A stretch of DNA of 58,723 nt from Prasinococcaceae sp. CCMP 1430 (GCA_013416795.1 RQSC01000053.1:1-58723), one strand, 5' to 3'. Shown: positions 8,286 to 56,425, counted from the stretch's first letter. A program made the numbers and translations. Notes: generated by a model from the letters alone, not told the origin.

Positions 8286-8437
8286 NNNNNNNNNNNNNNN
8301 NNNNNNNNNNNNNNNNNNNNNNNNNNNNNNNNNNNNNNNNNNNNNNNNNNNNNNNNNNNNNNNNNNNNNNNNNNNNNNNNNNNNNNNNNNNNNNNNNNNN
8401 NNNNNNNNNNNNNNNNNNNNNNNNNNNNNNNNNNNNN
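8286..8437. other. Assembly gap (N run)
   Basis: 152 Ns. Confidence 0.99.
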
Positions 8438-32509: not shown

Positions 32510-33210
32510 NNNNNNNNNNNNNNNNNNNNNNNNNNNNNNNNNNNNNNNNNNNNNNNNNNNNNNNNNNNNNNNNNNNNNNNNNNNNNNNNNNNNNNNNNNN
32601 NNNNNNNNNNNNNNNNNNNNNNNNNNNNNNNNNNNNNNNNNNNNNNNNNNNNNNNNNNNNNNNNNNNNNNNNNNNNNNNNNNNNNNNNNNNNNNNNNNNN
32701 NNNNNNNNNNNNNNNNNNNNNNNNNNNNNNNNNNNNNNNNNNNNNNNNNNNNNNNNNNNNNNNNNNNNNNNNNNNNNNNNNNNNNNNNNNNNNNNNNNNN
32801 NNNNNNNNNNNNNNNNNNNNNNNNNNNNNNNNNNNNNNNNNNNNNNNNNNNNNNNNNNNNNNNNNNNNNNNNNNNNNNNNNNNNNNNNNNNNNNNNNNNN
32901 NNNNNNNNNNNNNNNNNNNNNNNNNNNNNNNNNNNNNNNNNNNNNNNNNNNNNNNNNNNNNNNNNNNNNNNNNNNNNNNNNNNNNNNNNNNNNNNNNNNN
33001 NNNNNNNNNNNNNNNNNNNNNNNNNNNNNNNNNNNNNNNNNNNNNNNNNNNNNNNNNNNNNNNNNNNNNNNNNNNNNNNNNNNNNNNNNNNNNNNNNNNN
33101 NNNNNNNNNNNNNNNNNNNNNNNNNNNNNNNNNNNNNNNNNNNNNNNNNNNNNNNNNNNNNNNNNNNNNNNNNNNNNNNNNNNNNNNNNNNNNNNNNNNN
33201 NNNNNNNNNN
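32510..33210. other. Assembly gap (N run), preceded by a G20 tract; hides the 5' end of the bestrophin gene
   Basis: 701 Ns; G run at 32488-32507. Confidence 0.99.
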
Positions 33211-35080: not shown

Positions 35081-35387
35081 NNNNNNNNNNNNNNNNNNNN
35101 NNNNNNNNNNNNNNNNNNNNNNNNNNNNNNNNNNNNNNNNNNNNNNNNNNNNNNNNNNNNNNNNNNNNNNNNNNNNNNNNNNNNNNNNNNNNNNNNNNNN
35201 NNNNNNNNNNNNNNNNNNNNNNNNNNNNNNNNNNNNNNNNNNNNNNNNNNNNNNNNNNNNNNNNNNNNNNNNNNNNNNNNNNNNNNNNNNNNNNNNNNNN
35301 NNNNNNNNNNNNNNNNNNNNNNNNNNNNNNNNNNNNNNNNNNNNNNNNNNNNNNNNNNNNNNNNNNNNNNNNNNNNNNNNNNNNNNN
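35081..35387. other. Assembly gap (N run)
   Basis: 307 Ns. Confidence 0.99.
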
Positions 35388-35917: not shown

Positions 35918-36610
35918 CATTGGCCCCACCACTGTTGTACACACACAGACGCACATCGATTTGACGCCGCCTCAGTCCGCGATTCATGAACCCCGAACTG
36001 AGGTACGCCCGGCACCCCTCCTTCGATGTGTTGGTCGGTCGGTGTCCTCCCACCACGGCACGTGACGGGAAGGCCAGCAGGGAAAGGGCAAAAGCAGATT
36101 CTTGGAGAAAGGCCGCGCAAAAGGAGAAAGAAAAAAACGGCTGCGGATCGGTCGGGGGCAGTCGGCGCGCGGCCCGTCGCCAGCCAGCTCGCGTTGAAAA
36201 AAAAAACTGCTTGCTTTGATGGAGTGTGAGGCGGCGTGGAAAACACGCACAGATGCGAGGAAAGCACACCGTCGATCGTTGTATCGATTCGGTTGGCGCG
36301 ATCTCCGCAATCTCTCTGATCGAGCACCAGGTGGGATTTTTTTCTTTTCCCCGCGAGCCAGCCGGCGCCGTGGACCATGGCTTGCTGGATGTTGGGTTGG
36401 GTTGGTTGGTTGGATGGCCGCTTCGCTTCTCGCTCGCTCGGTCGCGCTTTGTGGATGGTTCTGTCGGTATAGTCGGTTGGTGGGGGTTGGGGTTTGTGGT
36501 TCGTTGGAGGCGCGAGCGCGCCGCCGCGCGGCCCCATCCGCGGCCCCCTATCCGCGCGTCGCGCGCGCGCGCGTCTCGGCGGCCGCGTTGGAGACGGACT
36601 CAGATTCGGA

Positions 36611-36713
36611 NNNNNNNNNNNNNNNNNNNNNNNNNNNNNNNNNNNNNNNNNNNNNNNNNNNNNNNNNNNNNNNNNNNNNNNNNNNNNNNNNNNNNNNNNN
36701 NNNNNNNNNNNNN
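36611..36713. other. Assembly gap (N run)
   Basis: 103 Ns. Confidence 0.99.
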
Positions 36714-36726
36714 GTCGGTCGGTGAG

Positions 36727-37224
36727 ATGGCGGGCGCGAGCGCGGAGGGGACGGCCGCGCCGTCGGTGGTGTGGTTCCGCCGCGATCTGCGCGTGCGCGA
36801 CAACCCCGCGCTCGCCGCGGGCGCCGCCGCGGGCGCCGTCGTGCCCGTCTTCGTGTGGGCACCCGAAGAGGAGGGCCAGTTCCAGAGCGGCCGCTGCTCG
36901 CGCTGGTGGCTCAAGCAGAGCCTCGAGGCGTTCGCGGGCACGCTCGACGCGCTCGGCGCCAAGCTGGTCATCAGGAGATCGGCGGAGATGCTGGCAGCCC
37001 TGCTGGAGGTCTGCGAGGAGTCAGGTGCGTGCCCCCACCCCCCCGCAAGCCCACCTCGCGCGCCGCCGAGTGCGCCAAAGCGCCGGACCGGACTGTGCCG
37101 CGCAGCCAACCCCAAAACATACCATCCGCGAGGAGCGCATAAGCACTGCGGATGGCGGGGTCGGATGCGCGCGGCGCGGCGCGCAAACGCGTTCTCCACC
37201 GCCGCCTCCGGAGCATTTTTCTCT

Positions 37225-37258
<34 letters not shown>

Positions 37259-39201
37259 GGGGGGGGGGGGGGGGGGGGAATGTCCTGCCAATGCGCTGGG
37301 GCGCTGACCGCCTTCCACTCTGCGCCTCCAAAAAACAAAAAAATGCGCCCACCCGTGCACATCCCCTAGGTGCCAAGACGGTCCACTTCAACCACCTCTT
37401 CGACCCCGTGAGCCTGGTGCGCGACAACGTGGTGAAGCAGGGCCTGCAGGACGCCGGCATTGCAGTGCACACGTACAACGCCGACCTCCTGTTCGAGCCA
37501 TGGAACGTGCTCGGCGACGACGGCAAGGCGTTTTCGACGTACGACGCTTTCTGGGAGCGCTGCCTCAAGAGCGAGGCGCCGCCCTCGCCGCTGCCCGCAC
37601 CGGCGTCGCTGACGCCCGCGCCCGGCCTCGCGGACCTCGACGGCGAGTCGGTCGAGGAGCTCGGCCTCGAGGAACCCGCGGAGGCGCCGTCGAACGCCGT
37701 GCTGTCCCAGCGCTGGACGCCCGGAGAGGAGTCCGCCATGAAGCGGTTCATGCAGTTCATCGGGGCCGAGGGCCACCTGGGCAAGATGGACCGCGCGATG
37801 CTTCGGCGCGTGGTGGTCGACGACGGCGATACGCCCAGCACGAGCTGCCTGAGCGCCTTCCTGCACTACGGCGAGATCTCCGCGCGTGACGTCTGGCAAG
37901 GCCTGCAGGGCGCGCACGTCAGCGAGGTCGCGCGGGCCGCGTGGGCGCGGCAGTTGGGGTTCCGCGAGTACTCGCGCTACCTGACCTTCCACTACCCGTT
38001 CACGCGCGAGCGCTCGCTCCTGGAGAACTTGCGCGCGCTCCCCTGGTGCCACGACCAGAACCTCTTCAAGGCGTGGCGGCAGGGGCGTACGGGCTACCCG
38101 ATCGTCGACGCAGGCATGCGCGAGCTCAACGCGACCGGCTGGATCCACAACAGCATACGCGTGCTGTGCGCGAGCTTCCTGGTCAAGTACCTGCTCCTGC
38201 CGTGGCAGTGGGGCCTCAAGTACTTCTGGGACAGCCTGCTCGACGCGGACATCGAGTCGGACGTGCTCGGCTGGCAGTACATCGCCGGCTGCCTGCCCGA
38301 TGGTGTGCCGTTCGACGAGCTGCCGGACCCGCACGCGGAGGGCCTGAAACTCGACCCGCAGGGGCGCTACGTGCGCCGCTGGGTGCCCGAGCTCAGCCGG
38401 CTGCCCAGCGAGTGCATACACAGGCCCTCGGAGACCGACTGCCCGACACTCGAGGCCGCGGGTGTGGAGCTCGGCGTGACCTACCCACTGCCGGTGTCGG
38501 ACGAGACGACCGCCCGCGAGCGCGTCAACAACGCGCTCGAGCACGTGCGCTCGGTCATCGCCAGTGGCAACACCTCGGAGCCGGTGCCCTACACGGCCAA
38601 TCCCATTGGCTCCATCGATGTCGACAGCGCGAACAACAATACTGGCGGCGTGGCGGGGGCCAACGACAGCGGCGCGGCTGTGAACCAGCCGGGTGCGCAA
38701 GGCGTTGCATCGGGCGGGACCACGGGGGCGGCCGTGGCGAGATCCGAGGGGCAGGGGCAGGAGCTGCCGCAGCTGGTGGCGCAGCAACAGGGGCGGCGGC
38801 AGCAGCGCGTCATGCAGCCCCCCGCAGCAGTGGAGGGCTCTTCCCTCAGCGACGTGCTCGTCCCGCAAGTGGAGGTCGAGGCCAGCGTGCCCGTGCTTTC
38901 GCGCGGCGCGGCGGCCGCAGCGACCGTCCAGCACGGCAAAAACCGCCTCGGCGAGGGCGCGGGGTCGGGGGCTGAAGGGAGCGGCGGCGCTAAGGACGGC
39001 CGCGCGGCCAGGAGCGACTTGGCCGCGCTGCAGAGCGGTGCGAGGGACGCCATGGATGGCGTGGCGCCGCTCATGACCGCACCTGAAGGCGGCGCGGGGA
39101 ACAGCTCAGACTCGGCGAAGGACGCGGGGGACGAGCCGCCCGCGCCAAAGAAACAGAAAGTGGGCGGGCAGCATGGCACGGCCCCAGCCACTGTGCAATG
39201 A
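36727..39201 (+). CDS. CRY1: Plant cryptochrome (pCRY, CPH1/CRY1-type) with C-terminal extension; join(36727..37024,37370..39201)
   Basis: VVWFRRDLRVRDNPAL, VFVWAPEEEGQFQSGRCSRWW, GFREYSRYL, AWRQGRTGYPIVDAGMREL, LPWQWGLKYFWDSLLDADIESDVLGWQY (Asp equivalent to AtCRY1 D396; Trp triad present); PKKQKV NLS-like tail. Confidence 0.95.
37228..37278. repeat. C29 immediately followed by G22 (homopolymer inverted repeat) inside the CRY intron
   Basis: Directly visible; run lengths may be imprecise. Confidence 0.85.
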
Positions 39202-53751: not shown

Positions 53752-54628
53752 TCACTCGCGCTCGAACACGAGCCAGAAGTTGTTGGCGGGCATGTCGCGC
53801 ACCTCGCGCAAGTCGAGGCCCTCGGCGGCGCACGCGCGGGCGACCTCGTCAATGTCGCGGTACCCGAAGGCCGCGTCGCGCGCGCGCAGGCTCGCATCGA
53901 AGGCGCGGTCGCTTTCGCCGTTGAATGCGCCGTCGCGCGTGAAGGGCCCGTACACGCCCAGCACCCCACCGCGCTTCAGCACGCGCGCGGCGCCTGCGGC
54001 GAGGCCGAGCGTAGACTCCCAAGGGCTGATGTGCGTCCTGCTCCGGCCCAGGCCCGAGACACAGGTGGCGCGGGCGGCGCCGTCAGCGCCACGAGCACCA
54101 GCGACGCTAGCGACGCCGCGACAAGCAGCTGCGCGAGCAGCCGCGCATGGCGCGACGCACATGTTGACGCACACCACGGCGTCGTACCGACCCGCGCCTT
54201 CTGCCTCCGCCTCCGCCTCACCCCAGCGGCTAAGAGTGAGCCCGTTGCGCGGCCCGCATGCGGCGCCGAGGTCAGCATGTGCTTGTGCATGCGCGTGTGC
54301 GCGCGTGTGATCGCATGCGTGTGCGCCGTGCCGCGCACCTGTTGGCAGCGTCAAGCTGAGAGGCCTTGCGTATGTCGGCGCCGCCTGCCCGCGCGTTCTC
54401 GCAGTGGTGCTCGATGGCAGGCAGCAGTGCCGGGTCGGCCTCAGTAGGAAACCAAACGGCGCCGCGCGCGCCGGGCAGTCGCGGCGCCAGGTACGCCGCG
54501 TGCTCGCCGGGGCCCGACGCCACCTCGAGCACACGCGCGCCCTCGGGGAGTCCCGCCGCCAGCAGCGCCGCGAGGATCGGCTCGCGATTCCTGACGAATG
54601 CCGGCGATGTCGGCACGCTCCCCGCCAT
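53752..54628 (-). CDS. METTL26: DUF938 / METTL26-like methyltransferase; complement join(53752..54037,54161..54229,54339..54628)
   Basis: SPAFVRNREPIL, VLEVASGPGEHA, WFPTE, VNM|THISPW across intron, YGPFTRDG..ESDRAFDASLRARD..GYRDI, MPANNFWLVF. Confidence 0.93.
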
Positions 54629-54827
54629 TGCCACCGCGCGGTACCCCGTCGTCGCCGCCGCGCGAGCCGCGGCCGCCCTCGCCCGTGATCCTTCCCGCGT
54701 CCCGGCTGCTCGCGCGGCGAGCATGTGCGAGCGACGAGCCCCGCGGTCGGGACCGCGCCGCGCGCGCTGTGTGGTTCAGTGCCGGCAGCGGGAGCGACTG
54801 CGAGAGAAAAAATTGCGATGCATTGTA

Positions 54828-54832
54828 TTACA
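54828..54832 (-). terminator. Putative UGUAA polyadenylation signal of the plant-like CRY
   Basis: TTACA on + strand, 85 nt past the stop at 54917. Confidence 0.4.
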
Positions 54833-54916
54833 TGTACCACCCCCGGTACCTGGACACTGTTCCGACACTACCGACCCCGACACCTCCGCCTCGGTCCTGA
54901 CGCGCGCTGCCCGCTG

Positions 54917-56425
54917 TCATTGAGCCTTCGAGAAGAACGCGCGAATGTCGCGCTGGGCCACAGAGCGGGGCGTGAACTGCGGCTGCCTCTTCTGCCTCGC
55001 CAGCGAGGACGAGGAGGCCGCGGTGTGCTCGCCCACCTGCGCTCTCGCGAACGTGCGCTTTCCGCCACCACCCCCGCCCCCGCCGCCACCGCCCGCGGTT
55101 GCAGTCCCCTTTCCCTTGCCTTTTCCCCTGAGCGGCGGGATGGTGTACACGCGTATGCGCTGCTGCTCCTTGTTGCGCCACACGGTGGAGCCCACGGGCG
55201 CGTCGATGACGTCGTACCCATTGCCATCCTCGTCGCGCGGAGGTGCGGTGGCGCGCGCGGCGCGTGCGGCCTCCAGCGAGGCCTGTCGCGCGGCCTTGAG
55301 ATCCCTTAGCCTGGGGTGGCGCTCGGGGTAGTTGGCGCCGAGAGCGACGCCCGCGCGCGCGAGCACGTCCGGGGGCGCGTTCCAGGGCTCGTGCGTGTGC
55401 TGCTTGGGCAGCAGCGCGAGCTCCGGCACCCACTTGCGAATGTACTCGCCCGTGGGGTCGCTCGCCTTGCTGACGGGGCTGACGGTGAACGACCACTGGT
55501 CGATTCCGCACTTGGCGGCGTTCTGCCACATCATGCCGTTGATGGCCAGATCCCCGTCGACCAGGAAGTCGTGGAAGTGCCTCGCGCCCTCGCGCCAGTC
55601 GATGTTGCAGTAGTCCACCAGGTACGCGGCGGCCGACATGCGCACCGACTGCGAGATGTAACCCGAGGCGATGAGCTCGCGCATGGCGGCGTCCACCAGG
55701 GGGAAGCCCGTGCGCCCTTCACGCCAGCCGCGCAGCAGCTCGCGCGCCTCCGCGCCGCCCAGCCAGCGCTGGTTGGCGTATGCCGGCCGCAGCGGCGCCG
55801 CGCTGAGTGCGGGCCAGTGATGCAGCTGCCAGTACGCCAGGTCGCGCCAGTAGAGCCGCCGATAGGCAGTCTTGGAGACGCGGAACCCCCCTGCGGCCTC
55901 GACCCCGGCGCGCACGCGCCGCGGCGAGATGATCCCGAGCCGCAGGTATGGGGACAGGCGAGAGACCGCCTCGCGCGAGTCCGCGCGTGAGCGGTCGCGC
56001 TCGTACCGCGCGTACCGCTCCGAAGTCCACCGCGCGAGCTCGGCGTGCGCGGCCGCCTCTCCGAACCCTCGCCAGTGCTTGGCGAACTCGTCGCTCCATC
56101 GCGGCACGCCCGGCTGCGCCCCGTCGACGTCGAGGCCGAGCGCTGACAAGGGGAGCGGCCGCGCCGCGGCGACCTCGTCGGCGCCGTGGCCAGGCGGGAG
56201 CGTCGCGGGCGCCGCGTGCGTGCGATAGTCCTCCCCGAGCTCTCGGCAGGTGGCCACGAAGGGCGTGAGCGTGCCGAAGTGGCCCGTCCACTTCCCCGGA
56301 AAGGGCAGCCGCACGTCCTCTGGCGCGTGCAGCAGGAATCCGGGAAAGAGTACCACGTCCACGCCCGCGTCCGCGAGCGCGCGCGCGGCGGCCGCGTCGC
56401 ACGCGCGCAGGTGCGGCTCGTAGCG
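54917..56425 (-). CDS. Cryptochrome/photolyase family protein, plant-like CRY (CryP/PPL) type, 5' end in gap, C-terminal PIP-box
   Basis: SRLSPYLRLGIIS, RRLYWRDLAYWQL, WREGRTGFPLVDAAMREL, GYISQSVRM, IDWREG, DGDLAINGMMWQN..GIDQWSF, DPTGEYIRKWVPEL; tail ends QRDIRAFFSKAQ. Family is certain; clade is inferred from the SQSVRM and NxMMWQN...DQW motifs. Confidence 0.9.
   Translation of the reverse strand, partial: RYEPHLRACDAAAARALADAGVDVVLFPGFLLHAPEDVRLPFPGKWTGHFGTLTPFVATCRELGEDYRTHAAPATLPPGHGADEVAAARPLPLSALGLDVDGAQPGVPRWSDEFAKHWRGFGEAAAHAELARWTSERYARYERDRSRADSREAVSRLSPYLRLGIISPRRVRAGVEAAGGFRVSKTAYRRLYWRDLAYWQLHHWPALSAAPLRPAYANQRWLGGAEARELLRGWREGRTGFPLVDAAMRELIASGYISQSVRMSAAAYLVDYCNIDWREGARHFHDFLVDGDLAINGMMWQNAAKCGIDQWSFTVSPVSKASDPTGEYIRKWVPELALLPKQHTHEPWNAPPDVLARAGVALGANYPERHPRLRDLKAARQASLEAARAARATAPPRDEDGNGYDVIDAPVGSTVWRNKEQQRIRVYTIPPLRGKGKGKGTATAGGGGGGGGGGGKRTFARAQVGEHTAASSSSLARQKRQPQFTPRSVAQRDIRAFFSKAQ

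Follow-up and report, generated by a model that had tools for sequence, protein, structure and literature searches.

Introduction

The PCRY-like proteins, with Phaeodactylum CryP as their reference, are a subfamily defined by the sequence markers WRDLAY, MWQNxG, and VGLR (Deppisch et al. 2022, PMC9498864). Among PCRY-like members, VGLR (pl1) is found in 74%, WRDLAY (pl2) in 83%, and MWQNxG (pl3), which is absent elsewhere, in 97% (PMC9498864). Like photolyases, CryP has been isolated with a FADH radical and MTHF (Petersen et al. 2021, PMC8591175), and according to reviews no function or partners have been assigned to the subfamily (PMC8591175, PMC9498864). PCRY-like/CryP proteins are widespread in marine algae and occur in some aquatic animals, and their sole studied member has yielded indirect knock-down phenotypes only.

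Ligase I, FEN1, p21, Pol32, and others bind PCNA through the PIP box, a Q-x-x-[ILM]-x-x-[FY]-[FY] motif that sits, with basic residues around it, in a disordered tail at a protein terminus. PIP-like motifs are also read by proteins other than PCNA.

The locus described here lies in a stretch of 58,723 nucleotides from Prasinococcaceae sp. CCMP 1430 (GCA_013416795.1 RQSC01000053.1:1-58723), termed the window. Its minus strand carries a PCRY-like gene whose product ends in a predicted PIP box. The subfamily itself is already known; the conserved, putative clamp-docking tail is its new feature, and the motif could have been overlooked because the sampled diatom members do not have it. The original prediction, made from the window sequence, knew of no PCNA-tethered member of this family. 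The full-text literature searched likewise held no report of a PCNA-binding or PIP-bearing cryptochrome/photolyase member, the subscription CryP papers (Juhas 2014, König 2017, Oliveri 2014, Fortunato 2015) lying outside the scope of the search.

Gene Structure and Transcription

The minus-strand ORF ending at 54917 corresponds to residues 158-659 of a cryptochrome/photolyase protein of Prasinoderma coloniale (P0121; EukProt gene model PRCOL_00005772-RA, 659 aa), which falls in the cluster of the window's own protein. In a tblastn comparison the two match over 56425-54920 in one block with 100% identity, so the visible coding part is a single exon and the independent gene model has the same C-terminus. 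Translation of the ORF closes with SVAQRDIRAFFSKAQ, followed directly by the TGA stop (Table 1). The start codon and the codons preceding residue 158 are hidden by an assembly gap, and no coding sequence for the N-terminus of P0121 is found upstream of it. Other runs of N in the window lie at 8286-8437, 32510-33210, 35081-35387, and 36611-36713. A public contig (run X7, record 16, 8571 nt) covers the whole of 54000-56425 and may close the gap beside the gene.

Table 1. Coordinates of the features of the PCRY-like gene, counted from the first letter of the window.
Feature	Position	Strand	Evidence
Last four codons S-K-A-Q + TGA stop (54917-54919)	54917..54931	-	Sequence; colinear RNA contig
Visible coding sequence, residues 158-659, single uninterrupted exon	54920..56425	-	tblastn 100% identity; no RNA-contig joints 54822-56323
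Predicted PIP-box codons Q648-R-D-I-R-A-F-F655	54932..54955	-	Sequence; P0121 position; ortholog alignment; enrichment
Disordered Gly/Lys/Arg-rich linker, residues 596-647, NLS-like basic patches	54956..55111	-	AlphaFold pLDDT; unalignable among orthologs
Clade-specific post-PHR block (GYDVI...RIRVYTIPPLRG), residues 556-595	55112..55231	-	Alignment + AlphaFold
FAD-binding domain of DNA photolyase (PF03441), residues 346-544	55265..55861	-	Pfam E-value 1.6e-59
MWQN	55520-55531	-	Residue mapping
Asn453 codon	55538-55540	-	Residue mapping
WRDLAY	55832-55849	-	Residue mapping
Assembly gap, 417 N, covers start codon + ~157 N-terminal codons	56426..56842	.	Sequence + tblastn

Transcription was followed in Logan contigs from four runs aligned to 54000-56425. 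Two of these are RNA runs, a marine metatranscriptome (X1) and a run of the organism itself that is probably RNA. Both contain two spliced junctions of the downstream DUF938 gene (54036/54160 and 54229/54339, GT..AG on the minus strand), and because of these junctions both are taken to be genuine RNA of the alga. Over the cryptochrome-like gene, RNA contigs without a splice joint extend across 54822-56323, except for 55034-55057, which is unbridged. One RNA contig (X1 record 2) runs colinear with the DNA over 54822-55033 and includes the 3′ UTR, the stop, the motif, and 26 more codons, while further RNA contigs cover 55058-56323. Transcript-derived orthologs encode the same C-terminal architecture.

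A hidden intron that would alter the C-terminus, using a GT after an AG near 55036, was considered and rejected, since the RNA contigs show no joint and a colinear contig runs from 55033 through the stop. An intron within the unbridged 55034-55057 is unlikely. A spliced transcript with a different C-terminus, which the original prediction had named as an outcome that would contradict it, is not seen in the RNA contigs on either side of this short segment.

The environmental RNA contigs of X1 are 95-99% identical to the gene over 54822-56323, which indicates that a natural Prasinoderma population expresses it. They carry eight differences from the window, none of them (0/8) in the motif codons.

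Neighbouring Genes

The downstream neighbour (53752-54840, minus strand) encodes a DUF938 protein (PF06080). Its RNA-supported GT..AG introns occupy 54037-54159 and 54230-54338, and the mechanical ORF reads through both. About 17 kb from the PCRY-like gene, a second cryptochrome gene lies on the plus strand at 36721-39201, within an ORF at 36226..39201. It is a true plant-type PCRY, with Arabidopsis CRY2 as its best PDB match (1.7e-126) and the Asp-type sequence DADIESDVLGWQY. A Pro/Gly-rich insert in this gene is probably an unannotated intron, and no PIP box was found in the tail of its product. The alga thus possesses a PCRY gene as well as a PCRY-like one.

Family Membership and the Photolyase Pocket

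Pfam identifies a photolyase N-terminal domain and a FAD-binding domain in the window protein. Among solved structures its nearest relative is PhrA, a class III CPD photolyase (4u63; 1e-46 by sequence; 1.9e-29 by Foldseek, with a TM of 0.88 on the target), followed by Arabidopsis CRY1. Marker pl2, WRDLAY, is present at residues 350-355. At pl3 the protein reads MWQNAA (456-461), matching MWQNxG at five of six positions; the last position is A or S in its nearest relatives, and all other clade members read MWQNAG. Marker pl1, VGLR, is absent from P0121, this being an optional marker found in about three quarters of members.

The phylogenetic tree combined six bacterial class III-like photolyases with 123 eukaryotic proteins that carry MWQN, the reference PtCryP not being among them, and it sets the eukaryotic clade (123) apart from the 6 bacterial sequences with an SH-aLRT of 100. 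The window protein groups with three metagenomic or transcriptomic relatives and Pycnococcus, in a position sister to the chlorophyte and dinoflagellate groups. The gene had originally been described as a plant-like cryptochrome/photolyase; the Pfam domains, WRDLAY and MWQN, and the place in the tree narrow this description, and on sequence the protein belongs to the known PCRY-like/CryP subfamily. Some PCRY-like orthologs (P0005, P0145 from Ulva, P0148 from Sanguina; P0154, P0185) have extra N-terminal domains, either ZNF598-type PAH (PF23202) or WHEP-TRS (PF00458).

The Trp triad is formed by W457/W434/W391. Asn453, within AINGMMW, occupies the position of E. coli N378, a site held by Asn in photolyases but by Asp in plant cryptochromes. 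In the alignment with 1u3c, Asn453 pairs with D396 of AtCRY1, and the Asp opposite flavin N5 that marks a PCRY is not present. Both the triad and the photolyase-type Asn had been claimed beforehand, and both stand in the alignment.

The E. coli numbering used for the window protein was derived from its alignments with A. nidulans, T. thermophilus, and PhrA. In this numbering, four positions of the CPD pocket are changed, E274 to R347, N341 to Q416, R342 to S417, and W384 to N459, and W277 and M345 are retained. PhrA, A. nidulans, and T. thermophilus have E, R, and W at positions 274, 342, and 384, and this class III CPD pocket is not found in the window protein. The earlier reading of R at E274 and N at W384 is correct, with the pocket more altered than it had noted (also Q416 and S417), as is its suspicion that the protein may not be a standard CPD photolyase. 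That identity is ruled out by the four differing pocket residues. A plant cryptochrome is ruled out by Asn in place of Asp, the real PCRY being a separate gene in the window.

The C-Terminal Motif and Its Predicted Structure

The C-terminus of the window protein is QRDIRAFF-SKAQ, in which QRDIRAFF (residues 648-655) agrees with the consensus Q-x-x-[ILM]-x-x-[FY]-[FY]. Upstream of the motif are RGKGKGKG, an 11-Gly run, and ARQKRQ. The minus-strand reading of the motif and the Gly/Lys linker with its basic, NLS-like patches are exactly as originally predicted, and AlphaFold renders the linker disordered.

In the AlphaFold single-chain prediction, made with a 51-sequence alignment, the fold is confident to about residue 595 (mean pLDDT 86, pTM 0.86). 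The post-PHR block, residues of which G560, D562, and T585 are invariant, is predicted to form two short strands at 562-565 and 580-583 (pLDDT 81-94). This GYDxI...RVFT block is specific to the subfamily, forms a confident predicted beta-hairpin, and is conserved among orthologs P0005-P0340 even in frogs (LPVITRKEF). The linker has a pLDDT below 50 over 596-613 and 615-648, and it leads to a terminal helix at 651-658 with a pLDDT of ~72 in the full model. Lying in a disordered terminus and forming a short helix, the motif has in this prediction the setting of a PIP box. When residues 556-659 are folded alone, the same helix appears with a pLDDT of ~80; because the tail alone folds equally well, the confidence of the helix is independent of any docking onto the photolyase domain.

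Conservation of the Motif among Relatives

Three word searches gave ~130 subfamily members with complete C-termini, sampled from prasinophyte-grade and core green algae, dinoflagellates, one cryptophyte, chlorarachniophytes, diatoms, frogs, and many unnamed marine sequences. Among 49 orthologous tails there are 7 canonical boxes, where 5000 shuffles lead one to expect 0.0084, and 11 strict boxes, where 0.044 are expected. The chance of a canonical motif in these shuffled tails is ~2e-4 per tail. The anchor [ILMV]xx[FYW]-hydrophobic falls within the last 35 residues of 52 of 115 non-redundant tails (5.8 expected, shuffle maximum 15). Gln stands at PIP position 1 in 37 of the 52 anchored tails, against a background of 4.4% (binomial p ~2e-38, a value for which kinship inflates the independence). 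The counts are not phylogenetically independent, and dinoflagellates supply many of the sequences. By its residue pattern, what is enriched is the PIP-box register, including the PCNA-specific Gln.

In the anchored tails, the motif has L, I, or M at position 4, Y or F at 7, and F or M at 8, and basic residues often follow it. The unnamed marine sequences read QKSITSFF, QKTITKYF, QETIKNYF, QRTIKSYF, QLQMTTFF, QTSLSSFF, QTNLNNFF, QKSLRSFF, and QKRVTDFF. The corresponding octapeptides are QTLLRRYY in Picocystis, NQSIKNFF in Guillardia, and QRTIAEAF in Pycnococcus. Most dinoflagellates have Q[ST]VL[DQ]EYM (e.g., QSVLDEYM), and the three closest relatives have QKMLSELW, QRSMTEFL, and QKTLGEAW. Positions 7-8 are non-canonical in many relatives (Y-M in dinoflagellates, L-W and A-W in closest relatives), and some tails are without the Gln.

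In a MAFFT alignment, only two islands align after the photolyase domain. These are the GYD...RVFT block and the terminal Q-x-x-h-x-x-a-h, of which the Q is nearly invariant. The Gly/Arg/Lys-rich linker between the two islands, 45-150 residues long, is unalignable. The motif is kept while its flanks drift, as is the case for conserved PIP boxes, and each of the three large algal subclades in the tree contains it. Conservation in orthologs had been proposed as a check on the original prediction, and the motif is indeed present at the same place in algal relatives. The pattern supports a genuine, selected short linear motif of putative PIP-box architecture.

Among the ~130 tails, the motif was not found in frogs, in most diatoms (which have plain Lys/Arg tails), in several core chlorophytes, or in an [ED]RALRxY group. 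Members of this last group, one green lineage comprising P0006 (Pedinophyceae), P0011, P0152, P0160, and P0176, have [ED]RALRxY and then an acidic stretch where others have the box. These tails may resemble the RPA32C-binding helices of SMARCAL1, XPA, and UNG2. The amphibian PCRY-like proteins P0315, P0321, and P0327, which form a basal branch of the tree, end in a conserved IPPxY[FL]HLAN, which does not have PIP spacing.

Proposed PCNA Docking and Its Alternatives

PCNA is the favoured and moderately probable binding partner predicted for the tail, and the motif points towards a role of the CryP/PCRY-like subfamily in DNA replication or repair. The motif would insert into the hydrophobic and Gln pockets of PCNA, and the flavoprotein would be leashed through its flexible tail to DNA-loaded clamps, either at replication forks or at patches of repair synthesis. 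Nuclear import, and possibly DNA affinity, may come from the basic patches. Once tethered, the light-reduced flavin domain would most likely work on DNA, repairing or processing it in the manner of a photolyase. A standard duplex CPD would not be its substrate, because four CPD-contacting positions are substituted. Retention of W277, M345, the Trp triad, and an Asn of photolyase type, together with the FADH radical and MTHF of CryP, favours a DNA-directed, photolyase-like activity over transcriptional signalling; a purely signalling photoreceptor role is considered less likely than that of a DNA repair or processing enzyme.

A clamp-coupled, repair-type function is a tentative suggestion. The uses put forward in the original prediction, photorepair at forks or of single-stranded DNA, or else a gating of S phase by light, are speculative. 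It is likewise conceivable, if rather doubtful, that the algal PCRY-like/CryP proteins are ancestrally PCNA-tethered flavoenzymes, which would carry out light-powered repair or processing on the sliding clamp, at forks or patches, of a lesion or structure that ordinary photolyases do not handle. In the chlorarachniophyte Bigelowiella, plant-like CRY transcripts peak at dawn and PCNA before dusk (PMC5635652). This timing argues against a strictly S-phase role and is compatible with daytime repair patches.

The motif could be real and selected and yet serve a partner other than PCNA, such as the Rev1 C-terminal domain, Mlh1, an RPA-type docking site, or another signalling partner of a cryptochrome-like receptor. 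At position 8, M, V, I, or A frequently stands in place of an aromatic residue, the two closest relatives have L or A at position 7, and Pedinophyceae and their relatives have the [ED]RALRxY and acidic tails. PIP-like motifs in general are able to bind several partners, and knock-down of PtCryP, the sole studied member, affects light-harvesting proteins and other photoreceptors. Against such a partner, the specificity of the motif for PCNA lies in Gln1 and the aliphatic position 4, each of which is strongly enriched, and many members have fully canonical boxes with basic flanks. Rev1-type motifs, for their part, need FF and have no requirement for the Gln or for the hydrophobic position 4, whereas Y-M variants dominate here. 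A non-PCNA partner is on balance unlikely, and it carries the most weight among the alternatives to PCNA.

The long, unalignable, low-complexity linker between fold and motif is difficult to reconcile with an intramolecular latch like the tail of Drosophila CRY, which follows directly after the fold. In such a latch, the aromatic pair would occupy the flavin/substrate pocket in darkness, and light would free it. The terminal aromatic pair does lie on a short predicted helix, and the remodelled CPD pocket could take a peptide, but the enriched Gln1 would have no role, and the equal or higher pLDDT of the helix modelled away from the photolyase domain is weak evidence against this arrangement, which appears improbable. 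Rather than recruit the protein, binding to chromatin-loaded PCNA could lead to its destruction by CRL4-Cdt2 in S phase or after damage, as for a PIP degron. One relative has QKRVTDFF, which is close to the Cdt1 degron core, and another has QRSMTEFL. The signature is nevertheless missing from most relatives, and the window protein has R-A rather than T-D at positions 5-6, has no basic residue at +4, and ends in S-K-A-Q; by the motif rules (Thr-Asp at 5-6 and a basic +4) a degron is rejected here, and little credence is left to it. Least probable is that the tail ends in a generic amphipathic helix without any particular partner, which in this species has hit the exact consensus by chance. In favour of this, positions 7-8 are the non-canonical L-W and A-W in the closest relatives (74% and 59% identity), but a canonical box would arise by chance in very few tails, and its position and register are kept across deep lineages while the surroundings are scrambled. 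Docking on PCNA is the preferred reading.

For the subfamily, a conserved terminal PIP-type box provides the first concrete, testable partner hypothesis, and it makes DNA transactions a more natural expectation than transcriptional light signalling. Should the protein indeed bind PCNA, light-driven flavin chemistry would be coupled to the replication and repair machinery, and there would be good reason to look for what the remodelled pocket acts on. Ancestral PCNA tethering, if true, would make this the first clamp-coupled photolyase-type system.

Comparison with Known Systems

With the PCRY-like/CryP proteins, the window protein shares the fold, WRDLAY and MWQN, the photolyase-type Asn, and a short C-terminal extension, and it clusters with proteins of Chloropicon and Pycnococcus, species reported to have the subfamily. 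It differs in having no VGLR and in the final residue of the MWQNxG marker, where it reads MWQNAA. The literature on the subfamily describes no C-terminal motif or partner, and the sampled diatom members have Lys/Arg tails without the box. Plant-type PCRY is of the same superfamily and falls with the window protein in the CPD I/III cluster. Opposite flavin N5, however, PCRY carries Asp, together with W-Q-Y, whereas the window protein has Asn together with W-Q-N.

PhrA (4u63) has in common with the window protein the Asn at flavin N5, the Trp triad, W277, and M345. The pocket residues E274/N341/R342/W384 of PhrA are R/Q/S/N in the window protein. PhrA is also without a tail, whereas the window protein adds the beta-hairpin block, the disordered linker of ~52 residues, and the terminal box. 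The tail of Drosophila CRY resembles that of the window protein in placing a terminal helix with paired aromatics (FFW) on a photolyase-homology domain. In the window protein, by contrast, the linker is long and disordered, Gln1 and the aliphatic position 4 are conserved, and the predicted helix is independent of the domain.

With the established PIP clients DNA ligase I, FEN1, p21, Pol32/p66, and UNG2, the tail shares the consensus, the predicted short helix, and the disordered, basic, NLS-bearing terminus. None of these canonical clients is a flavoprotein photoreceptor or photolyase.
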